Positions 12,830 through 52,037 of a stretch of 64,000 nt of DNA are shown in pieces. Where the stretch lies: positions 179,404 through 243,403 of the IMG/VR virus record IMGVR_UViG_3300010399_000031. One strand, written 5' to 3'. Under the pieces are notes generated by a model. It was given only the letters and a program-made list of their open reading frames with translations. It ran no database searches and was not told where the DNA came from. How positions within the stretch are numbered: position 1 is the stretch's first letter; each line of letters begins with the position of its first letter. The position numbers were made by a program, and so were the translations under genes.

Positions 12830-13369
12830 ATGCTCACAATCGTCGAGCATCATTCTAGCAGTTATGGTCCAAGGACGTTTCATAACGCAAAAGCTGCTGA
12901 TTTGACAGTGGCCATTGCGGTGGATTACTCCACATTTGGTGAAAAGCTCACCATGAAAGCGGCAGGCTCGCACTTTATCGCTTGTCCGTTTAAGACGGAT
13001 GCTTTAACCAATGCCAGAGAGCTTTATAAGTCGCTGTACCGCTGGCGTGCCTCAGTACTCAATGTGGCCGGTAACGGGATGTCTACGTTTGTCAAACATG
13101 ACGTAACGCAAGAACAAGTGAATCAGTACATCTTTGATATCCTCTCGACTGTGCACAAACATTACCCTCTAGCTGGGATTGTATCTGGGGGTCAAACGGG
13201 TGCCGATATTGCAGGTGCAGCCGTGGGGTACAAGTTGGGCATTGCTACGACTGTGACATTGCCCCATGGGTTTAAACAGCGCGATACAACAGGTGTCGAT
13301 AGCAACCACACTCAAAAAGAGATTCGCCAGCAGATCCTTGATTTCGCAGAGAAAATTTACGCTGCGTGA
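12830..13369 (+). CDS. YpsA/SLOG-family (putative molybdenum-carrier-like) nucleotide-binding protein
   Basis: 'YGPRTFHNAKAADLT', 'VLNVAGN', 'IVSGGQTGADIAG'. Confidence 0.75.
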   Translation: MLTIVEHHSSSYGPRTFHNAKAADLTVAIAVDYSTFGEKLTMKAAGSHFIACPFKTDALTNARELYKSLYRWRASVLNVAGNGMSTFVKHDVTQEQVNQYIFDILSTVHKHYPLAGIVSGGQTGADIAGAAVGYKLGIATTVTLPHGFKQRDTTGVDSNHTQKEIRQQILDFAEKIYAA

Positions 13370-13395
13370 AATAATGTGCGAGAAACCATTGATGC

Positions 13396-13506
13396 GCAGT
13401 GTAGAGCCAGTGTACCCAGCTGAGGGAGAGGGGTTAAGCAGCTGGGGCGACTTGACACATGCTGATGCCCTCCATCATCATCGATGTTTCTGGGTAATAC
13501 CACTGC
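13396..13506 (+). ncRNA. structured RNA, unknown
   Basis: GCAGTG/CACTGC closing stem; CCCAGCTG/CAGCTGGG; TGATG/CATCA. Confidence 0.45.
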
Positions 13507-13527
13507 ACGGCTGCGGTGCAGGCGCAT

Positions 13528-13606
13528 GGGCGAGGGGTATCCACTCCCGGACGGAGAGTCTAGACAGTATAGGCTTTGTTGGGTTCGAATCCCAACCTTG
13601 GCCTCA
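13528..13606 (+). ncRNA. tRNA-like RNA with canonical T-arm
   Basis: GTTGGG-TTCGAAT-CCCAAC T-arm; acceptor-like GGGCGAGG/CCTTGGCC; non-canonical D and anticodon arms. Confidence 0.6.
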
Positions 13607-13625
13607 GCGACAGCAGAAGGATTGT

Positions 13626-13755
13626 GAGGAAGGCTAGGGAATCGATGATCCCAGCAGCGAATACCCCGTTTGCTGCCGAGTCGTAGTAACTGATCCTCGT
13701 GATGGGACGAGGTGTTGGTTGGCTCATTGCAGGTTCAATTCCTGCCCTTAACCTC
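13626..13755 (+). ncRNA. extended tRNA-like RNA with T-arm
   Basis: GCAGG-TTCAATT-CCTGC T-arm; GAGG-AAGG/CCTT-AA-CCTC closing stem; three internal hairpins. Confidence 0.55.
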
Positions 13756-13869
13756 GTTTTCTTTAGACCACTTAAGTGGCACATTGTTGGGTCTCGCCTT
13801 CACTGTTTCACTCCTGGGCGACTGCCATGACTTGACGATGCGCCAACCTAAGTAGTTTCTTGTAGTAGA

Positions 13870-13954
13870 CCCGAGGTAGCTCAGTCTGGTAGAGCGGCGT
13901 CTGTCCGGCCGGTAAAGACGCAGGTCGGTGGTTCAAATCCATCCCGAGGGGCCA
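13870..13954 (+). tRNA. aberrant tRNA (15-nt anticodon loop, encoded CCA; isotype undetermined)
   Basis: D-arm GCTC-AGTCTGGTA-GAGC; anticodon stem GCGTC/GACGC; T-arm GGTGG-TTCAAAT-CCATC; acceptor CCCGAGG/CCGAGGG; G73-CCA. Confidence 0.8.
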
Positions 13955-14013
13955 ATTTCGATAGTATCTGTAACACCCACGGCAGAGATGCCACTTACTA
14001 GGACTAGACCATC

Positions 14014-14304
14014 ATGTTGTATTTGAAAGTAATGTCGAATGAAGATTTACCGGATACCGATCCGCTTAAGGATTTCAGCATCATTCCGATCAATAACACT
14101 GATCGATTGGTGTTTGTGAAGGACCAGTCTTATCCTGAAACGGATGTGCACTGGTGTGCGCTGATTGGTCCTCACGCAGGGTCGAACCAGGATGGATTTG
14201 ACATTCCCAGTCACGACAAAGACCGAGTGGTCCCCTTAACTGGCAACGCCTATGTTTTGAACGAGCAAGGCAAAACCATCGCCAGTCACGGTGTCGTGAA
14301 ATAA
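14014..14304 (+). CDS. hypothetical protein
   Basis: 'MLYLKVMSNE...LTGNAYVLNEQGKTI'; SD AGGA. Confidence 0.75.
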   Translation: MLYLKVMSNEDLPDTDPLKDFSIIPINNTDRLVFVKDQSYPETDVHWCALIGPHAGSNQDGFDIPSHDKDRVVPLTGNAYVLNEQGKTIASHGVVK

Positions 14305-14950
14305 AGCTGTCTGATGAGCCGTGCAAGTCGGCAGATGAGAATCCAATACACGCGATACCTCGCCGCGTGTGGATTTCGTCGGGTGCAAAGCCCACGAAAT
14401 AACGAAGATCACATCGTGTGTCTTGGAAGGACCTCACGGTGGTAGGCCAGATTGCTTAGGACGTCGATGAGCCACTTTGACCGGTGGTGTCCCGAGAGCA
14501 TCTACCTTTTAGATCTTCGTGATTACAGCGGGCGCGCGATGCGTCAAGTTGTGACCTTCTAACCGAATGGAGGAAGGACGCAGCCTGTAAGAACCTATCT
14601 GGGTGAAAGCAGACACCCGTGGACTGACCTCCACGTGAGGTAACGACTGGTCAGAATCGTTATCGAAGATTTAGGTATCTTACGGGGTGCGGAAGTTATG
14701 AATCCGAACCGATGCCTCGCCGGCATTCGCCGAGGAGGGAGTCGCTTGATTCCCTCCTCACACTAGCCTTCATCTTCCCGCAGCTTCGAGTCACACCACC
14801 ATTCGTGTTCGGCAAATCCGAGCGAGTTGGGGCAATGTGCCTAGGCTGCGGGAAGATGTGGGTTGGTCGACCTTGCATCGATGCGCTTTGAGTTGATGGG
14901 TCATGGGAAGAGGGGCGGGGGAGGGCTAAAGCTCTCCCCCAATCCTTATT
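14305..14950 (+). ncRNA. large structured ncRNA (about 640 nt), class unknown
   Basis: many nested helices, a 14-bp perfect stem (14771-14784/14845-14858) and a candidate kissing loop CTGACC/GGTCAG; ends in hairpin 14917-14940. Confidence 0.7.
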
Positions 14951-14980
14951 TATGCCGGAAAAAAAGGATGAGATAAGAAA

Positions 14981-15436
14981 ATGAAATACTGGATTGATGC
15001 AGAATTCAACTCATACGGGGGTCAGTTGATTTCCCTTGGAATGGTGCGTGAAGACAATGAAAGTCTTTACCTGGTGTATAACCGACCGATGCACATTCAT
15101 CCCTGGGTGAAAGAGCATGTGATGCCGTATTTGGATTCAGTGCCAGATCATATTTCGATTCATCGGATCTTTCCCTCCAATTCAGCTAAGTACATCGAGA
15201 AGTTTATGGCGAGTGATGACAATCCTATCGTTATCACCGATTGGCCTGATGATATCTCGTTTTTCAGTGAGCTTCTTCTGACGGGGCCGGGCACGATGAT
15301 CAACATTCCACGGATATCATTTCGCATGCATCGTATAGATGCTTACCCCACGAAAGTCGAAGGTGCGGTGCAGCACAACGCCTGGTGGGATGCCGTGGCT
15401 CTGAAAGCTAAGTGCGAGGAGCTTGGCTTGGAATAA
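14981..15436 (+). CDS. DEDDh 3'-5' exoribonuclease (Rv2179c/RNase AS-like)
   Basis: IDAEFN..GG.LISLG (ExoI), WPDD (ExoII), HNAWWDA (ExoIII). Confidence 0.8.
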   Translation: MKYWIDAEFNSYGGQLISLGMVREDNESLYLVYNRPMHIHPWVKEHVMPYLDSVPDHISIHRIFPSNSAKYIEKFMASDDNPIVITDWPDDISFFSELLLTGPGTMINIPRISFRMHRIDAYPTKVEGAVQHNAWWDAVALKAKCEELGLE

Positions 15437-15463
15437 AGTAAAAAATACACCACTTTCTATTAT

Positions 15464-16020
15464 ATGCGAGAGTGCTCCGCCACAGTGGACGTCCGCCTTA
15501 ACGCTTTCTCCTTTCTGGCGTTTTAGGTCGATGACTGCAATGTTGTATCGATTGGTCGAGCACAATTTTCGCAAGCCGGAGTCGTTGTCCGGACGCGCTA
15601 ACTTTCCGTGTAGGCGCGAGAGCCTGGTTTCCGACACTTACTGGGATAGCGCCCGGCGTCGGATAAACGGAGCGGGTGGAGCTACGCTAGGCTCCATCAA
15701 GTTGTACGCATGAGTGACAGGTCGACGGCCACCCAGGAGTTCTGGTAGCCTGATAGATCGACCACCTACGGGACGCGGAGGTGCTTCCTCCAGAACACCG
15801 GTTCGCGCATCCCGACTCGTTCACTCACTGAGCGCGCAGCCTGCAATGCTGTTAGGACTGAATTCGAATAGGTCTTGATAGCATTGTGGGATGCTCGTTC
15901 GAAACGCAGATCCGCTAGTCGATTCACCAAACGACTCCACGCGCTAGGGAATTGACAATCGAACTAGGGTTTTGCTTTCGCGCATCGGTGTGGTAGGGGT
16001 GGCTTCGGCCACCCCGCTAT
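15464..16020 (+). ncRNA. large structured ncRNA (about 560 nt), class unknown
   Basis: 20-bp G-U-rich hairpin 15840-15890; long-range GGAGTCGTT/AACGACTCC; multiple stems; ends at GGGGTGGC-TTCG-GCCACCCC. Confidence 0.7.
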
Positions 16021-16049
16021 GCCGTCGTTTAAATGACTTAGGGACCATC

Positions 16050-16526
16050 ATGGACTTTCTCTACCACGGCTCAGCCTTTAAACAAGACGAATTGAAACCT
16101 GGCTTTCACCACACCGGTAAGAAAGTCAATTGGGATCAAACGGAAGCGAACATCTGGCTTTACGCCACTACGCTCCGAGAAGAAGCTATTAGCCTAGGTT
16201 TTGCTTCAGCAGTGGAAAAGCAGTACGATGTGAAGCGCTACCACACGGAAGGCAAAGACATTCACTTCGATGTAAGAAAGGGCGAGACACTCAAACCACA
16301 TGAGCTGAACGAAATCAAAGTTTATCTGTACACGATACAGTATGATAAACGTGATGGCTGGGTGAAAGTGAACAACCAGTTTAACGGGATTGACCAAGAG
16401 TACAAGACCACCCATGTCATCAAAGAGAACCTCTTTAAACGAGAGGAAATCAATGTTGAGCAATGGTTGAAAGACAAGAACTTAACCATCGCTACTGAGA
16501 GTATGCCGATCTGGGCAAAGTGGTAA
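16050..16526 (+). CDS. hypothetical protein, probable head cargo
   Basis: MDFLYHGS start; C-terminal ATE site and PIWAKW tail. Confidence 0.75.
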   Translation: MDFLYHGSAFKQDELKPGFHHTGKKVNWDQTEANIWLYATTLREEAISLGFASAVEKQYDVKRYHTEGKDIHFDVRKGETLKPHELNEIKVYLYTIQYDKRDGWVKVNNQFNGIDQEYKTTHVIKENLFKREEINVEQWLKDKNLTIATESMPIWAKW

Positions 16527-31968: not shown

Positions 31969-32015
31969 GGTTCACACCCCAGAAGCATTTTCTAAAACGC
32001 ACCAATGAGGTAATA

Positions 32016-34274
32016 ATGTCTGCTCTGACCCTTTTCCGGCATAAGGCCCCGAAAGCAACGCCGTCCGCAACCGCATTGGACGATTTCGCCCAGCAACTGC
32101 GTCAACACATCGACGGCGCTGGTGCAACGTTCAAAGATCCCTCGCTTGGCGCGGCTGCTGTTGCGATGGAGAACTTCAACGAAGACGTCGCGGGTCGCAT
32201 GACCGACACGCTGCAAGAGTTGAATGTCGCGCTCGAATCGGTGCTGCAAAACATCGGCATGCCGCTCGCTTCGGCAAACGACAAAGAAGATCCGTATCAC
32301 AAGTTTGGCGTTACCAAGACGCAGATGGAGTCCGCTATCGCTGCCGGCATCATGGCCTCGAACGTGGAAGCCGCGCTCGGCGCAACATATGCGGCCGAAT
32401 CGATGCGTGTTCAGCCGGACACGGCGTTCCGCACGACGAAGGTGATGGATGTGTTCGCGCCGGACCAAGTCTCGCCGGACAAGCGTCTTGCGCTCGAAGC
32501 GTACGACGAGAAGGACAACAAGAACGCGATGGTGTATTCGGTCGCGTACAACATGCAAGCGGCCAAGCAAGACGCGTTTGCTGAAATGTTCTTCCCGACG
32601 GTCGTCGTCACGCCCGATCAGGTTGGCTTCACGATGTCGATCCGCCTGATCAACGTGTACAACGAAGTGCGCCGCGACATCTCGGGCAAGCCCAGTCAGA
32701 ATTTCAACAAGCGCAACATCGTCCAGGCCGTGATCGACCCGACGATTCTGCGCAACGACACGACCCGTATGTACCCGGTCGTGCGTCCGGAAAGCACCGC
32801 CATGTTCGTTTCGTCGGGCGACGTCGCTCCGCGCAACATCACGCTGGATGACGGACAGGTCATCACGACTGCGCCGTTGGCGATGCAAACGGAACTCTCG
32901 CTGATCGCGATTTCGCAGACCGATGCCCTGCTTCAGACCGGCATCATGGATTCGACCGATGCGATCGATACGGCAATCGGCCTGGACAACCTGTACTTGA
33001 AACTCTCGGGTACGGTCAGCGGTACACCCACGACCGAAGTCGTGAAGTTCTCCACGCGGCGTCTGCCCCTTGCGACGTTCAACTACGCTCCGCAAGGCAA
33101 CTACCGCACGATGCTGCTGAACTTCAGCACGACGAGCCTGCTCGTAAACGGCACGACGACGAAGGTCGACGGCTCGACTTCGCAGCTGCTCACGTTGCTC
33201 CAATCGGGCAACTACAACGTGCGACTGGGTGTGTACGTCTCGGGTCAGGTGAACTGCGAACTGGGTGACACCAACATCATGGCGTCGAAGGTTTCGGTGC
33301 AATCGGTGCGCAATGCCGCCGGAGAAGCGCTCGATCTGACGACGGGCGACGGTGCAACGATCGTTGCTCTGTTTGCCAACGCCACGATGATCGGTTACGA
33401 TCTCGAAGCGCGCCGTACGAACAGCAACCGCCGTGAACGCGGTCAGTTGCTCGACACGACGTTCTACAACCAAGTGTACGCAGTGCCGCTGCGGGCTCCG
33501 ATCACGATTCCGCGTCCGCTCACGATCGGCGATGCCAACGATTCGAGCGATCTTGCCGCTCTGATCACGGCAACGCACGTGCGTACGACGAACGCGGCGA
33601 TCGACGAGCTGCTTAATGCAGCGAACGTACTTGAAGCATACGTCTCGAATCTCGACCCGCTCGGTACGATTCCGGACGTGCTCGGTGTGACGCGTTTCCT
33701 CGTGACGCCGTTCTTCGAGCGCAAGACGATCGACGTGGCTGCGGTCATCAACAACCTGACGTCGCAAAATCGTCCGGCGGATCTGTCGGCTGTGATCGTG
33801 AACTACCTGCGCGACACGGTCTACCGCATGTACACGGCGTCGGGCTACAAGGCTGCGGCTGACGCGCTCGCTGGCGGTATCGGTCCGGTTCCGACGGTCA
33901 TCATCGGTACGGATCCGACGATCGCACGCTACATCAATGTGGAAGGCGATCTGCGCACGCTCGGCGGCTCGTTCAACGTGCGTGTTGAGTCGACGCTGAA
34001 CACGAACATGGCTGGTAAGATCGTCGTGTCGTTCGGCGAATTCGGTACGGGCAAGGAAGGTGTGCCCAACCCGATGCACTTCGGTAATATGGCGTGGAAG
34101 CCGGAACTCACGCTCGTGCTGCCGCTGCACCGCAACGGCGCAAACAGCAAGGAACTCACGGTTCAGCCGTCGTTCCTGCACGTCGTGAACCTGCCGGTGA
34201 TGGCCATGTTCGACGTCGTGAACTTGTCGGCCGCTGCGACCGACAAGATCGCTATCGACTTCCACAACGTCTGA
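32016..34274 (+). CDS. major capsid protein precursor (phiKZ gp120-like)
   Basis: 752 aa; 'ALEAYD' maturation site, 'QDAFAEMFFPTVV', 'TNSNRRERG'; extreme codon bias. Confidence 0.93.
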   Translation: MSALTLFRHKAPKATPSATALDDFAQQLRQHIDGAGATFKDPSLGAAAVAMENFNEDVAGRMTDTLQELNVALESVLQNIGMPLASANDKEDPYHKFGVTKTQMESAIAAGIMASNVEAALGATYAAESMRVQPDTAFRTTKVMDVFAPDQVSPDKRLALEAYDEKDNKNAMVYSVAYNMQAAKQDAFAEMFFPTVVVTPDQVGFTMSIRLINVYNEVRRDISGKPSQNFNKRNIVQAVIDPTILRNDTTRMYPVVRPESTAMFVSSGDVAPRNITLDDGQVITTAPLAMQTELSLIAISQTDALLQTGIMDSTDAIDTAIGLDNLYLKLSGTVSGTPTTEVVKFSTRRLPLATFNYAPQGNYRTMLLNFSTTSLLVNGTTTKVDGSTSQLLTLLQSGNYNVRLGVYVSGQVNCELGDTNIMASKVSVQSVRNAAGEALDLTTGDGATIVALFANATMIGYDLEARRTNSNRRERGQLLDTTFYNQVYAVPLRAPITIPRPLTIGDANDSSDLAALITATHVRTTNAAIDELLNAANVLEAYVSNLDPLGTIPDVLGVTRFLVTPFFERKTIDVAAVINNLTSQNRPADLSAVIVNYLRDTVYRMYTASGYKAAADALAGGIGPVPTVIIGTDPTIARYINVEGDLRTLGGSFNVRVESTLNTNMAGKIVVSFGEFGTGKEGVPNPMHFGNMAWKPELTLVLPLHRNGANSKELTVQPSFLHVVNLPVMAMFDVVNLSAAATDKIAIDFHNV

Positions 34275-34281
34275 ACGCAGG

Positions 34282-34398
34282 GCATGGTGAACGTGCATGA
34301 CCTCAATGGCTTCACGCCATACTCGGGGTGACGCTTGGAGTTGAGGTCGTCAGAAGTAAGTAGAGTTTAAGCTTCTGACGCGTTCACCCGAGCCATGC
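34282..34398 (+). ncRNA. structured three-way-junction RNA in the capsid 3' region
   Basis: GGTGAACG/CGTTCACC, TGACCTCAA/TTGAGGTCG, GTCAGAAG/CTTCTGAC, GCATGG/CCATGC. Confidence 0.55.
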
Positions 34399-50417: not shown

Positions 50418-52037
50418 TCAAGTTTTTAACTGATCGAGGTAGTCTTGATACTCCCTCATCCACTTCAGATTCATGTTCAGCATTTGCCGATCCACCACAA
50501 AATCATGAACTTGCTGATCCCATTTAATCTGGTGGTAATCATACCCAAATTCATTAATGAACGCGCTAACAACATAGCCGTTCACAATCACAGGTGAGCC
50601 TTCCACCACTGGAATAAACACCTGTGTATCCGGATCATAGTTTGGTACCACCACTGGGGTGCGTTTAACAAAACCATGTAATGAGGCAAACTCAGCTGGT
50701 CCCTTTAAGAAACTGTGAGGGTCCTTCAAACCTCGAATCAAACCCATTTCAATTTCTTTGTGAATTTGCACATGATCGTGTACCCACCACCAATCTTTAC
50801 CATCTTGCCTCACCCAGTGCGGATGTTCAGCCGACCACTGGTGGTGTGGATCTTCCTCAAACATCAACAACTTTCGCTCCTCACCCACCCGTGAAACGTG
50901 TAAATGTTTAACCGTGGCTGGACCGGTTGGTCCCATGACTATATCGCCTGCCTGGATCGTCTGAATTTGTTTCCACGACCGATCCGCCATAAGGACGAGT
51001 GATCCCGCCACAAAACACGAAGCACCACCACCACCGCCCGCAGCACCCGTAACAGTCCCAACAAAGATACCGTTCCATTTCACCACAGTTTTATTACCAC
51101 CTGAATCACTGGGCGCACCACCATAGAACAGGGTAAGGTTTAAAGTGAGGTCTTTAAATCGCGGACCCATAATCGGTCGACCATTGATCATGGCAAAAGC
51201 ACACTGATTCCAATCTCCACCCGTATAGATATTACCATTGCGGTCCACCATACCGTTTGCAATGGTAAATCCATTAAAGGTGTATCCCGTTTGTGAATCA
51301 AGAAAGTTAGTGTACTGGTTCCCTGAGAAAGAAAGCTGATTCAAATCAACAAAGACACACGCAATAAATGTGTGAGCGGACGAGCCGGCGAAATCTAAGT
51401 ACCAAAGACTACACTGCCAGTTATTACTGGAGTTAGGTTGAATCGCCGACCAAGGGGCGCCGATGTCGTCGCCGGACCCACTAACTGAAAAAGCACAGTT
51501 ACCCTGGGTGGCCAAAAGATATCCGTTAAGATCGTTTCCGCCGTACGCACGCGTCCAAGACATTTGGGAAATGTCAAGACCATACCCCCAATTACCAGGC
51601 GTATACGCCATGGAGTACGGGGTATTGAAATACGAGTACGAATCGATATACGTTCTTGCGTCGGTCGTTCCCCCGTTTGCCAAATCATAAAACGGGTAAG
51701 CGTTATTGATGGTTCCCTGACCATCTGGGTTTCCGGTGTTGGCTGGGTAAGAACCCGCGGGGGTGTTATCGCTCGGTGTACCTTTAGCCATCGTAGTGAG
51801 GTTAAAGGCAATGTAGGCGCCATTATCGCAATTGAGATCGAAAGCGGCAATCGTCGCCCCGTGAACTGGAGCGACGCCAAAACTCTTCCCGTACCAATAA
51901 CTCCAAGCGTAACGTTGCCCAGGACTTACACCCGCCAATCTTGACAAGAGCGTATTTCCAGCATCAATTGTTCCGCTCTCACGACATTCGGCTTGAGCCT
52001 GACCGATACTGATCGCGCCAGACGTTTGCATCGTCAT
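50418..52037 (-). CDS. tail-fibre-associated protein with C-terminal Hint domain
   Basis: N-terminal 'MQTSGAISIG' fibre-attachment-like motif; GGGGGAS|CFVAGSLVLMAD, SAEHP, VIVNGYVVS. Confidence 0.8.
   Translation of the reverse strand: MTMQTSGAISIGQAQAECRESGTIDAGNTLLSRLAGVSPGQRYAWSYWYGKSFGVAPVHGATIAAFDLNCDNGAYIAFNLTTMAKGTPSDNTPAGSYPANTGNPDGQGTINNAYPFYDLANGGTTDARTYIDSYSYFNTPYSMAYTPGNWGYGLDISQMSWTRAYGGNDLNGYLLATQGNCAFSVSGSGDDIGAPWSAIQPNSSNNWQCSLWYLDFAGSSAHTFIACVFVDLNQLSFSGNQYTNFLDSQTGYTFNGFTIANGMVDRNGNIYTGGDWNQCAFAMINGRPIMGPRFKDLTLNLTLFYGGAPSDSGGNKTVVKWNGIFVGTVTGAAGGGGGASCFVAGSLVLMADRSWKQIQTIQAGDIVMGPTGPATVKHLHVSRVGEERKLLMFEEDPHHQWSAEHPHWVRQDGKDWWWVHDHVQIHKEIEMGLIRGLKDPHSFLKGPAEFASLHGFVKRTPVVVPNYDPDTQVFIPVVEGSPVIVNGYVVSAFINEFGYDYHQIKWDQQVHDFVVDRQMLNMNLKWMREYQDYLDQLKT

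Follow-up and report, generated by a model that had tools for sequence, protein, structure and literature searches.

A large, modular, structured RNA of phiKZ-like soil jumbo phages, possibly a new class analogous to GOLLD and ROOL

The bacterial and phage RNAs longer than 500 nt that have a conserved complex fold and no known function are few, namely GOLLD, ROOL, OLE, raiA and the HEARO-type RNAs, and all of them have proved rewarding to study; recent work has shown that GOLLD and ROOL assemble into giant cages made of RNA alone. GOLLD, which lies near phage tRNA islands, combines a universal 3′ region with a variable 5′ region and contains covarying kissing loops that were later shown to be intermolecular (PMC12286853). 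ROOL, a multi-pseudoknotted RNA of ~580 nt, is encoded by phages and by prophages, in many cases close to tRNA islands; its conserved kissing loop, at first taken as a tertiary contact, was later found to connect the molecules of an octameric cage (PMC12286853). Stable RNAs of the T4 tRNA cluster (species 1 and 2) are co-transcribed with tRNAs and freed by the tRNA-processing machinery; their function is unknown.

The RNA described here, RNA1, adds an example to the very small set of giant phage RNAs with an unknown job. It was analysed within a stretch of 64,000 nucleotides of the IMG/VR virus record IMGVR_UViG_3300010399_000031, referred to as the window, whose coordinates are used throughout (Table 1). 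Our best reading, to which we assign as a whole a probability of roughly 0.6, is that RNA1 represents a new class of stable phage non-coding RNA that is cut from a tRNA operon transcript and is analogous to GOLLD and ROOL. The same estimate covers the propositions that RNA1 is a stable, trans-acting, highly structured RNA of an undescribed family, and that this family is confined to one clade of phiKZ-like soil jumbo phages and absent from curated libraries. Function and oligomeric state are inferred by analogy only.

Table 1. Features of the RNA1 locus (window coordinates)
Feature	Coordinates	Strand	Details or basis
RNA1, whole large non-coding RNA	14305-14951 (3′ end approximate)	+	~645 nt
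5′ domain	14306-14529	+	Closed by GCUGU (14306-14310)/ACAGC (14525-14529); invariant CUGAUGAGCCGU...AGUCGGCA; hairpin 14348-14370; GCAA-loop hairpin 14375-14400; helix 14404-14410/14512-14518; UUUGACC loop 14476-14482
Linker hairpins	14531-14577	+	GGCGC/GCGUC (14531-14545); single-stranded AAGUUGU (14546-14552); CCUUCU...AGGAAGG (14555-14577) with GAAU/GAAA loop
Central four-way-junction module	14579-14692	+	Outer helix CGCA.CCUGUAAGAACCUAUCU with 3′ partner; inside it hairpins A 14601-14618 (loop AAAGCAGA), B 14619-14634, C 14639-14664
Loop of hairpin B, CUGACC (kissing partner 1)	14624-14629	+	Exact 6-nt complement of loop C
Loop of hairpin C, GGUCAG (kissing partner 2)	14649-14654	+	
12-bp hairpin, GCUU loop	14732-14759	+	Compensatory changes
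Universal 3′ domain	14764-14865	+	22-bp helix 14764-14786/14843-14865 and apical part; invariant helix base CAGCCU.UAUCU/AGAUGUGGGUUG; apical conserved CAC-ACCACC and GGGGCAAUG
Intrinsic-terminator-like GC hairpin (14917-14940) and U-rich tail	14917-14951	+	Terminator scan
TTTATGCCG, promoter-like motif for downstream gene, outside RNA1	14949-14957	+	Recurrence
Degenerate tRNA-like element	13870-13951	+	Counterpart by position of tRNA-Asn(GTT) in L005 and L006
151-aa exoribonuclease-like gene, syntenic anchor of the RNA family	14981-15436	+	phrog_2259, E = 7e-31

RNA1 lies in a gap (14305-14980) between a 96-aa ORF (14014-14304) and the 151-aa ORF of the exoribonuclease-like gene. No + strand ORF longer than 59 aa and no conserved ORF was found in this gap, and all 11 indels between RNA1 and its counterpart in L005 have lengths that are not multiples of three. 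The nearest IMG/VR relatives, L005 and L006, share 81% nucleotide identity with RNA1 and 90-100% in its core, versus 55% identity for the neighbouring protein and ~55-70% for the flanking coding DNA. Conservation sets in abruptly at 14305, directly past the TAA of the upstream ORF, and stops past the terminator. The stretch is non-coding, and its conservation is far above that of the surrounding genes. Its minimum free energy is -296.5 kcal/mol on the + strand (z = -9.7 against dinucleotide shuffles) and -242.6 on the - strand (z = -5.9). Both flanking ORFs are complete when compared with PHROG profiles (phrog_10337, positions 2-92 of 99; exoribonuclease, residues 1-148). A second large structured RNA, RNA2 (~15466-16020), lies just downstream and is far more abundant than RNA1.

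RNA1 is built of three modules, whose helices are retained through compensatory mutations. From 5′ to 3′ these are the 5′ domain, the four-way junction in the centre and the universal 3′ domain, behind which stands a terminator hairpin. The evidence includes a test free of circularity, in which the minimum-free-energy fold of the window sequence alone was scored in L005: 20 of the 22 pairs changed on both sides remain paired, whereas slid controls keep 2-9. In the same test, 17 G·U-type single changes were tolerated on the + strand versus 5-9. The + strand is the likely strand of RNA1, as judged by this tolerance, by the scores of a covariance model of the 3′ domain (R1; 64-115 bits on the + strand versus 24-38 on the - strand), and by the strand of the terminator.

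For the 5′ domain, RNAalifold with six lineages predicted 61 pairs, with 90.7% of cells paired; 19 pairs carry changes on both sides, versus 2-8 in slid controls, and none of 500 shuffles reached the observed value. Its 5′ end has CUGAUGAG and a GCCG/CGGC hairpin (14311-14332); the next nucleotides are AGAU (window) or AAAC (relatives), not GAAA. A helix that would close the whole RNA by pairing GUCGGCA (14327-14333) with UGCCG (14953-14957), past the terminator, was rejected because the 3′ word belongs to the recurring promoter-like motif. In the linker, the first local hairpin covaries (GGCGC/GCGUC in the window, GACGC/GCGUC in L005, GCGAC/GUCGC in L093). The word CAAGTTGT has just two copies in the window, one in the linker of RNA1 and one in RNA2.

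The four-way-junction architecture was predicted independently in the window, L005, L006, L093, L084 and L086. Its outer helix covaries at the first pair (C-G, U·G, U-A) and further in (GUAAGA/UCUUAC versus GUAACA/UGUUAU). The central module of L094 is reduced to hairpin A, hairpins B and C being absent, and L088 looks the same, as judged from the alignment only; B and C thus co-occur, either both present or both absent. The complementarity of the neighbouring loops B and C is maintained through paired changes: CUGACC/GGUCAG in the window and L005 corresponds to CUGACA/UGUCAG in L093, GACC/GGUC in L084 and GGCC/GGCC in L086. The chance of six contiguous pairs between two random loops is ~8e-4. 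Since these loops sit on neighbouring arms of a single junction, contact within one molecule only is no less plausible than contact between molecules. Moreover, the contact is not essential to the core function of the family, because L094 and L088 lack both hairpins.

The 3′ half gives the strongest statistics in the 22-bp helix of the universal domain, which is found in all members, including the minimal relative L096. Across ten lineages, 99.1% of the cells of this helix are paired and seven covarying pairs show changes on both sides. None of 500 shuffles reached the observed value for paired cells, for both-side-changed cells or for the covariation score, and two reached the covarying-pair count. 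For the 3′ domain overall, 92.9% of cells are paired and the covariation score is 0.374, versus 0.173 in shuffles (0/500 reaching). It should be noted that the invariant parts of this domain give no covariation, so that pairing there is unproven. In the segment of the preceding 12-bp hairpin, 12 of 19 predicted pairs have compensatory changes (eight lineages; 0/500 shuffles reach the observed value). The terminator hairpin has ten pairs, eight of them G-C, and a T-rich tail, and meets the criterion for an intrinsic terminator; it covaries across lineages, in all of which a T-rich run follows it. Another RNAalifold helix, pairing UUAUGAAYC (~14696) with GGUUCAUGG (~14898), was not adopted; its 3′ strand is near-invariant and the changes in its 5′ strand are uncompensated.

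These results bear on an earlier note, made from sequence alone, which had described a ~640-nt ornate RNA with a candidate kissing loop, GOLLD- or ROOL-like and perhaps of a new class. That claim is supported in each part, and its proposal to collect homologues and look for covariation yielded ~10 lineages with compensatory changes in most of the helices it listed. The helix ACACGCG/CGCGTGT (14348/14364), GGGTG/CACCC (14601/14614) and the 12-bp hairpin all held, each with compensatory changes. A helix placed at 14402/14512 held as GAAGATC/GATCTTC (14404/14512), also with compensatory changes, and a supposed 14-bp stem (14771/14845) proved to be the 22-bp helix. The exact complementarity of loops CTGACC and GGTCAG held and is both conserved and covarying. 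Two proposed helices failed and are present merely as complementary words: the CTGTAA of TTACAG/CTGTAA is part of CTGTAAG, which pairs with CTTACGG in a covarying helix (14584-14592/14676-14685), while in TGCGTC/GACGCA it is with the upstream GGCGC that GCGTC pairs, in the covarying local hairpin. The tRNA-cluster setting of its comparison with GOLLD and ROOL held in the relatives; the window itself has only a degenerate tRNA-like element.

RNA1 homologues were recovered, via the neighbouring protein, in ~10 lineages of phiKZ-like soil jumbo phages; this is the whole sample, and several lineages are partial. They always lie upstream of the same small 3′-5′ exoribonuclease-like gene, with other genes intervening in L084 and L094. 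The RNA is present in every upstream-reaching contig that has an exoribonuclease relative of at least 54% identity, except L098 and L099; these two RNA-less contigs represent a different phage type. Neither tblastn nor Pfam detected chimallin in the window; the relatives L084 and L092 have it. A phiKZ-type RNAP beta fragment is encoded in the window, and the nearest cultured relatives infect Burkholderia and Ralstonia. The family ranges from a core of ~190 nt to ~840 nt and is modular, the 3′ domain being universal and the 5′ and central domains variable. Thus, L096 (~190 nt) consists of the 3′ domain only and lacks the 5′ domain, and in L084 and the metatranscriptome variant X24 234 nt of the centre are swapped for a larger insert.

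Searches beyond this clade gave no further members. Neither blastn nor megablast matched RNA1, or the 12 kb around it, in GenBank phages, and the cultured phages phiCbK, Brevundimonas Gurke and Burkholderia FLC9, which encode the same exoribonuclease, have neither a gap upstream of it nor the RNA. Profile (nhmmer) and covariance-model searches found no RNA1 in 73 IMG/VR loci with nuclease relatives of at most 52% identity, and model R1 had no further matches among 104 loci. When exact words were sought in IMG/VR, JGI metagenomes and GTDB genomes, the matches were the same three phage contigs and L083, which was rejected as a relative, its 24-nt identity being to a tRNA 3′ end only; the word used for the metagenome scan spanned position 14821, which varies in other lineages, and sensitivity was reduced accordingly. 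The gapped motif GGGGCAAT-N15-18-AGATGTGGGTT gave two new IMG/VR and nine MAG matches, which we attribute to chance (~17 expected by our own arithmetic from database size); they show no covariance-model signal and no flank similarity.

The genomic neighbourhood connects the family with tRNA genes. A genuine tRNA lies 9-23 nt upstream of the RNA in L006, L094 and L093, and tRNAs are nearby in L088, L096 and L005. L006, L094, L093 and L096 lack the upstream ORF and have a tRNA ahead of the RNA. In the window, the tRNA-like element scores 39.9 bits with the Rfam tRNA model, has a 15-nt anticodon loop with CCGGCCGG and two acceptor mismatches, and is ~71% identical as aligned to the L005 region with tRNA-Asn; ARAGORN found no tRNA. 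The product of the downstream gene is labelled 'RNase H' in PHROGs, yet is closest to DEDD-type 3′-5′ exoribonucleases, its best PDB matches being 3′-5′ exoribonuclease entries (6s0m; Rv2179c, 4oke; E = 7e-4 to 2e-3). The gene that follows the RNA differs in L084 and L094, and in L094 and L095 the RNA is directly followed by a NUMOD3 homing-endonuclease gene.

Behind the terminator, TATGC.G is invariant regardless of the gene that follows. In the window, TTTATGCC[CG] occurs in gaps only, mostly just upstream of + strand ORF starts (7161, 9146, 16603, 20147, 34496), and once on the - strand (22591). The late promoters of phiKZ have a TATG consensus, with G as the start site (PMC4666361). We consider it likely that TTTATGCCG is a recurring phage promoter-like motif belonging to the downstream gene and not to RNA1, an inference from sequence alone.

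Relatives of RNA1 occur in metatranscriptome assemblies, three of which (X17, X23 and X24) were found to contain them; transcript ends are unmapped and no experiment has been done. The X17 contig, of 557 nt, falls entirely within the RNA1 span, and the X24 contig joins the RNA to the upstream ORF, consistent with co-transcription. No contig contains a joint that excises RNA1. Depth in RNA libraries is modest (~8-13), ~200-fold under that of RNA2 of the same phage, and carry-over of DNA cannot be ruled out, the relatives' flanking genes being too diverged to map on the window. The Logan contigs carry no strand or end information.

RNA1 matches no RNA class described in Rfam. The cmscan searches against Rfam 15 that the earlier note had suggested (13700-15200 and 12900-16100; E ≤ 10 and E ≤ 5, lax filters) returned for the window no family matching RNA1 at E ≤ 10, weak miRNA-type matches being due to chance. 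At the gathering score, the window and the loci of ten relatives gave tRNAs only. At E ≤ 10 there was no match to GOLLD (RF01998) or ROOL (RF03087), to group I or group II intron, hammerhead, twister, pistol or HDV-like models, or to bacterial RNase P RNA, tmRNA, SRP or 6S models; ARAGORN likewise found no tmRNA. Look-alikes picked by eye (hammerhead, K-turn, group II domain V, RNase P CR-I, SRP) each fail at a defining nucleotide or in Rfam.

In the reading we prefer, RNA1 would be the terminal portion of a phage tRNA operon transcript; no promoter motif of its own was found. Its 5′ end would be released by the nucleases that mature the upstream tRNA, and its 3′ end would be set by the intrinsic terminator and perhaps trimmed by the next-door exoribonuclease. 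The universal 3′ domain, with its invariant G·U-rich helix base, may carry the core function, presumably partner recognition, the 5′ and central domains being accessory. The contact between loops B and C may clamp the four-way junction in cis or join molecules. The mechanism we favour is a self-assembling RNA-only particle like those of GOLLD and ROOL, made late in infection and tied to tRNA or translation supply, with RNA1 a member of neither family; assembly rests on analogy alone, and we regard this more specific proposal as tentative, with the odds slightly against it.

The alternative that survives best is a ribonucleoprotein scaffold or decoy, in which the 3′ domain binds the neighbouring exoribonuclease or a sequestered host translation or defence factor and the kissing loop serves as an internal clamp. 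Y RNAs, which tether Ro to an exonuclease, offer a precedent, and OLE shows that a large ornate RNA can act together with proteins (PMC12286853). This explanation is supported by the synteny of the RNA with an exoribonuclease-like gene in every lineage, by invariant 12-nt and 9-nt stretches of the 3′ domain that resemble a recognition surface, and by the position of loops B and C on neighbouring arms of one junction together with their dispensability in L094 and L088. However, the exoribonuclease family is common in phiCbK-like and other phages without the RNA, and the protein therefore needs no RNA; genes are inserted between RNA and nuclease in L084 and L094; and no RNA-binding protein gene tracks the presence of the RNA in the data examined. 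The explanation remains possible.

A ribozyme or intron-like mobile RNA (self-cleaving, self-splicing or tRNA-processing) is very improbable. Its size, ornate fold, invariant unpaired nucleotides, abrupt boundaries and tRNA-cluster setting would suit such an RNA, as would the NUMOD3 genes and the CUGAUGAG and hairpin at the 5′ end, which are akin to half a hammerhead core. However, none of the intron, self-cleaving ribozyme or RNase P models matched at E ≤ 10, and after the hairpin an A-rich stretch (AAAC or AGAU) takes the place of the GAAA required in a hammerhead, so that the essential G12 of the hammerhead core is lost. Moreover, RNA1 interrupts no gene and its flanking ORFs are intact, the endonuclease gene occurs in one lineage only and beyond the terminator, and the metatranscriptome contigs show no excision joint.

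Equally hard to sustain is a cis-acting role, as the 3′ UTR of the 96-aa ORF or as a leader or attenuator of the exoribonuclease gene. RNA1 does lie between two + strand genes, with a terminator-like hairpin before the second, and the X24 contig is continuous with the upstream ORF. However, the upstream ORF is absent from four relatives and the downstream gene differs in two, as noted above, the downstream gene has its own promoter-like motif past the terminator, and a covarying multi-domain structure of ~645 nt exceeds known leaders by far. Finally, conservation acting on DNA (a replication origin, packaging or recombination site, with hairpins as incidental inverted repeats) can be all but excluded: inverted repeats are many and the - strand also beats shuffles, but compensatory changes go via G·U intermediates that only the + strand tolerates, selection acting on DNA offers no reason for loop-loop covariation, the covariance model favours the + strand by ~70 bits, relatives occur in RNA libraries, and the window contains no repeated iterons and no second copy of RNA1.

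A bolder reading, which we consider unlikely, is that RNA1 and RNA2, together with the exoribonuclease gene between them, constitute a single conserved 'RNA island' whose product is a particle or compartment based on RNA, either a cage or a ribonucleoprotein containing both RNAs. RNA1 and RNA2 share short modules, AAGUUGU and a GCAGCCU...GGG helix, which would then be their common building block. An unrestricted duplexfold of RNA1 with RNA2 paired both whole sequences and was uninformative. If true, the bolder reading would mean that nucleus-forming jumbo phages use such a structure in the cytoplasm for dealing with tRNAs, ribosomes or exported transcripts, a functional class new for viruses.

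Under the preferred reading, the RNA1 family is an independent case of a giant phage RNA in another virus group, the phiKZ-like, probably nucleus-forming soil jumbo phages. The recurrence of a tRNA-island context, of conserved 3′ and variable 5′ halves, and of a covarying kissing loop suggests a general, unexplained need of large phages. The natural modularity of the family provides ready deletion variants for structure and function work, and RNA1, the abundant RNA2 and the exoribonuclease gene would, in our opinion, be a tractable three-component system, given an isolated host-phage pair or by reconstitution in vitro.

Among known systems, the T4 stable RNAs differ in form from RNA1, being only ~120-140 nt and not ornate multi-domain RNAs. 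OLE resembles RNA1 in being an ornate RNA of ~600 nt with long invariant stretches, and it forms a homodimer (PMC12286853); it differs in residing on the chromosome of extremophilic Bacillota, with no link to phages or tRNAs, and in acting at the membrane with dedicated Oap proteins, and it has no Rfam match in RNA1. ROOL (RF03087) shares with RNA1 its size, genomic context and a covarying kissing loop, whereas the secondary structure of RNA1 is different and clearly modular, with the ~190-nt form made of the 3′ domain only in L096. GOLLD (RF01998) differs from RNA1, which has no Rfam match even at E ≤ 10 and with which no common sequence motifs were found, also in its hosts (Lactobacillales, mycobacterial and aquatic phages versus phiKZ-like soil jumbo phages) and in its 14-mer cage, none being known for RNA1. 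GOLLD and RNA1 are alike in being large (>600 nt), ornate phage RNAs located beside tRNA genes or downstream of them; both combine a conserved 3′ half with a variable 5′ half, both have covarying loop-loop contacts and an unknown function, and the family of RNA1 meets the GOLLD criterion of being phage-borne and tRNA-adjacent with a conserved 3′ and a variable 5′ region.

RNA1 is a genuine RNA gene, conserved and structured, whose family has not been described, and the earlier note's proposal of an ornate RNA of about 640 nt, possibly of a new class, is consistent with this. The element occupies the longest stretch of the window that holds no gene, and its + strand folds with a minimum free energy (MFE) of -296.5 kcal/mol (z = -9.7 against dinucleotide shuffles), as against the weaker -242.6 kcal/mol (z = -5.9, same control) of the - strand. 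The same element lies at the same place in two other IMG/VR contigs (L005 and L006), to which its DNA is 81% identical (core, 90-100%); the adjoining protein is just 55% identical, and nearby coding DNA about 55-70%. The conserved block begins immediately after the upstream ORF's stop codon and ends past a GC-rich hairpin and T-run. None of the 11 indels separating RNA1 from L005 is a multiple of three, which rules out a decayed gene. A scan of the gap against Rfam 15, run with lax filters and a limit of E <= 10, matched no family; the nearest Rfam match is the tRNA-like element upstream, with nothing else nearby.

The parent contig of the window, UViG_3300010399_000031 (243 kb), belongs to a phage whose closest cultured relatives are Burkholderia and Ralstonia jumbo phages (36-44% identity); among the products encoded in the window are virion proteins of the phiKZ type and a fragment of a multisubunit RNA polymerase, likewise phiKZ-type. 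A DNA-level search of GenBank phages with the gap gave zero matches. Two observations elsewhere in the window should be recorded. Its sole 58-60% G+C stretch holds a pair of ORFs, each about 760 aa long, that overlap completely on opposite strands; neither has a Pfam or PHROG match. In a 539-aa ORF, residues 340-393 give weak Hint/homing-endonuclease-Hint hits (E about 1e-4, short of the Pfam threshold), and this ORF may contain an intein.

Coordinates of features in the window and, where a locus is named, in related contigs
Feature	Position	Strand	Details
T-arm-like patch	13487-13650	+	within nominal ORF 13266-13637
T-arm-like word	13729-13746		GCAGGUUCAAUUCCUGC
tRNA-like element	13870-13951	+	Rfam tRNA 39.9 bits; 15-nt anticodon loop; two acceptor-stem mismatches
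Upstream ORF	14014-14304		96 aa; phrog_10337
RNA1	14305-~14951	+	~645 nt
5' domain	14306-14529		61 pairs in 6 lineages; 90.7% paired; compensatory changes at 19 pairs
Central module	14579-14692		four-way junction; outer helix covaries; hairpins A, B, C inside
Loop B	14624-14629		CUGACC
Loop C	14649-14654		GGUCAG
12-bp hairpin	14732-14759		strong covariation
3' domain	14764-14865		10 lineages; covariation
TTTATGCC[CG]	7161, 9146, 14949, 16603, 20147, 34496	+	
TTTATGCC[CG]	22591	-	
Downstream ORF	14981-15436	+	151 aa
RNA2	about 15466-16020	+	aligned across 12 loci (alignment A5)
UCCUUUC site of RNA2	about 15500-15515		invariant
RNA2 core	15567-15707		nearly invariant
Overlapping ORFs	31992-34298; 32016-34274	-; +	~760 aa each
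Hint-like ORF	50418-52037	-	539 aa
tRNA-like stretch, L096	about 330-435		
Extra gene, L094	5387-6004		NUMOD3-type homing endonuclease
Extra gene, L095	249-866		NUMOD3-type homing endonuclease
Extra gene, L084	5521-5997		158-aa ORF without known function
Metagenome word match, L083	42-65		24-nt identity

To avoid circularity, the MFE structure was derived from the window sequence alone and then scored in L005, where 20 of the 22 pairs changed on both sides remain standard (slid controls, 2-9). In the 3' domain, paired cells make up 92.9% across the 10 lineages (36-52% with slid partners), 13 pairs show changes on both sides, and the covariation score of 0.374 (0.173 in shuffles) was reached by 0 of 500 shuffles. 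The long helix of this domain, 22 bp, is paired in 99.1% of cells, and a single position can show as many as four pair types. The 5' domain is closed by an invariant helix, GCUGU/ACAGC. Most of the helices listed in the earlier note held up; the exceptions, TTACAG/CTGTAA and TGCGTC/GACGCA, were not confirmed, as they clash with the central helix CCUGUAAG/CUUACGG and the local hairpin GGCGC/GCGUC, both of which covary.

The candidate kissing loop proposed there also held as regards complementarity, and its decisive support comes from comparison across relatives. Loops B and C are perfect complements; the chance of this for two random loops of this size is about 8e-4, and that of at least one such pair among the 13 MFE hairpins is estimated at about 6%. 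The pair is retained in L005, and reads CUGACA/UGUCAG in L093, GACC/GGUC in L084 and GGCC/GGCC in L086, i.e., two independent compensatory events. L094 has lost hairpins B and C together, and the alignment indicates the same for L088. Their neighbouring position on one junction favours a clamp in cis, but sequence cannot settle whether the contact forms within or between molecules; the covarying kissing loops of ROOL and GOLLD, initially taken as tertiary contacts, turned out to be intermolecular (PMC12286853). A UUUGACC loop in the 5' domain could form 5 nt of pairing with loop C; this contact was given no weight because UUUGACC is retained in members that lack loop C.

Further lineages were found by protein search with the neighbouring 151-aa gene, followed by contig look-ups. 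RNA1 is full or nearly full in L088/L089, L093 and L094/L095 and truncated by contig ends in L086/L087, L090, L091 and L092; in L084/L085 the neighbouring protein is 79% identical. Every member keeps the 3' domain together with the segment that follows it and the terminator, with invariant words including CAGCCU.UAUCU, GGGGCAAUG and AGAUGUGGGUUG. L096, the minimal form, consists of this common part only (about 190 nt), directly 3' of tRNA genes. The central 234 nt are swapped for a larger insert (about 320-424 nt) in L084 and in a variant from metatranscriptome run X24, and the centre is reduced in L094 and L088. Loci whose neighbouring protein is <= 52% identical, phiCbK-like phages included, yielded no RNA1 with an nhmmer profile or a 3'-domain covariance model, and the matches obtained when IMG/VR and GTDB genomes were scanned with a gapped motif were all due to chance. 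The family is therefore small and restricted to one clade. Chimallin is encoded ~4.4 kb downstream in two relatives; a search did not find it in this 64-kb window. A 20-nt word of the 3' domain has a sole extra metagenome match (L083), in a sequence that by eye resembles a tRNA's T-arm and the 3' strand of its acceptor stem. The match is either fortuitous or a remnant of tRNA ancestry at the 3'-domain apex; the apex it touches is not conserved across the family.

No promoter for RNA1 itself was recognisable. tRNAs end only 9-23 nt before its start in L006, L094 and L093 (tRNA-Asn, tRNA-Ser and one cut by the contig end) and lie somewhat further upstream in L088, L096 and L005. From these two observations we infer that RNA1 would be co-transcribed with a tRNA operon, its 5' end presumably being freed by the nucleases that process tRNAs. 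At the 3' end stands a GC hairpin that covaries and is followed by a U-run. The window's tRNA-like element, the positional counterpart of tRNA-Asn(GTT) in L005/L006, is not accepted by ARAGORN; its anticodon loop carries an 8-nt palindromic insertion, CCGGCCGG, and it is possibly a decayed tRNA or a processing signal. T-arm-like words occur further upstream, one (GGGUUCGAAUCCC) within a patch 93% identical to L005 and present in RNA contigs (depth about 5 in X17, about 9-20 in X23); no tool calls a tRNA at either site. In L096, a tRNA-like stretch with D-arm and T-arm words lies between tRNA-Asn and the minimal RNA, and is called by neither ARAGORN nor Rfam because of a long insertion.

Relatives of RNA1 were found in three metatranscriptome runs: a 557-nt contig wholly inside the RNA1 span in X17 (depth 7.9), two contigs of about 190 nt in X23, and an 818-nt contig in X24 that takes in the final 46 nt of the upstream ORF and continues through RNA1. 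These contigs agree with expression and co-transcription without proving either: they are strandless, DNA may have been carried over, and the relatives' flanking genes have diverged too far for use as a silent control on the window.

An invariant TTTATGCCG comes after the RNA1 terminator. It is not part of RNA1, because the motif TTTATGCC[CG] recurs in the window in gaps only, mostly directly upstream of + strand ORF starts, because it follows the terminator whichever gene is next, and because it matches the TATG consensus of phiKZ late promoters, in which G is the start site (PMC4666361). From recurrence and consensus match, it looks like a phage promoter of this type.

The 151-aa gene that follows is labelled 'RNase H' in PHROGs and GenBank records. 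Among solved structures it comes closest to DEDD-type 3'-5' exoribonucleases (6s0m; Rv2179c, 4oke; E = 7e-4 to 2e-3) and is more like these than its label suggests; the activity is inferred from similarity. In some relatives an extra gene separates it from RNA1, each time after the terminator and promoter motif. In all relatives the exoribonuclease-like gene lies between RNA1 and a second gene-free stretch of 420-630 nt, a further large and conserved non-coding RNA (RNA2), which starts with an invariant ATTATATGCGAGAG (a TATG-type start/promoter), terminates in its own GC hairpin and has no Rfam match. Its core is extremely abundant in the same three metatranscriptome runs (depths of 1536, 218 and 21), where RNA1 stands at about 8-13. 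Both RNAs share CAAGUUGU, with just two copies in the window, and a GCAGCCU...GGG helix. Thus, RNA1 is one half of a conserved RNA island. The UCCUUUC site of RNA2 lies in CUCCUUUCUGG in the window and reads ACCUCCUUUCUGG in some relatives (L005 and L094 rows of A5, columns 79-92). The latter resembles the anti-Shine-Dalgarno 3' end of 16S rRNA; on this resemblance alone, RNA2 could conceivably act as an SD sponge or 16S-tail mimic.

As to what RNA1 does, the leading reading, that it is a self-assembling RNA particle of the GOLLD/ROOL kind, is by analogy only, both assembly and function being inferred, and we would put it below even odds (~0.35-0.4). Next ranks a role as a scaffold or decoy for proteins, which remains possible. 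That RNA1 is a ribozyme, a cis-leader or a DNA element is, in each case, unlikely. RNA1 is not filed under GOLLD or ROOL because it fails to match the curated model of either, the sole testable membership criterion. RNA1 has its closest analogues in these two, by size, ornateness, genomic context, 3'-conserved/5'-variable layout and a covarying kissing loop; like GOLLD, its family combines a universal 3' region with a variable 5' region.
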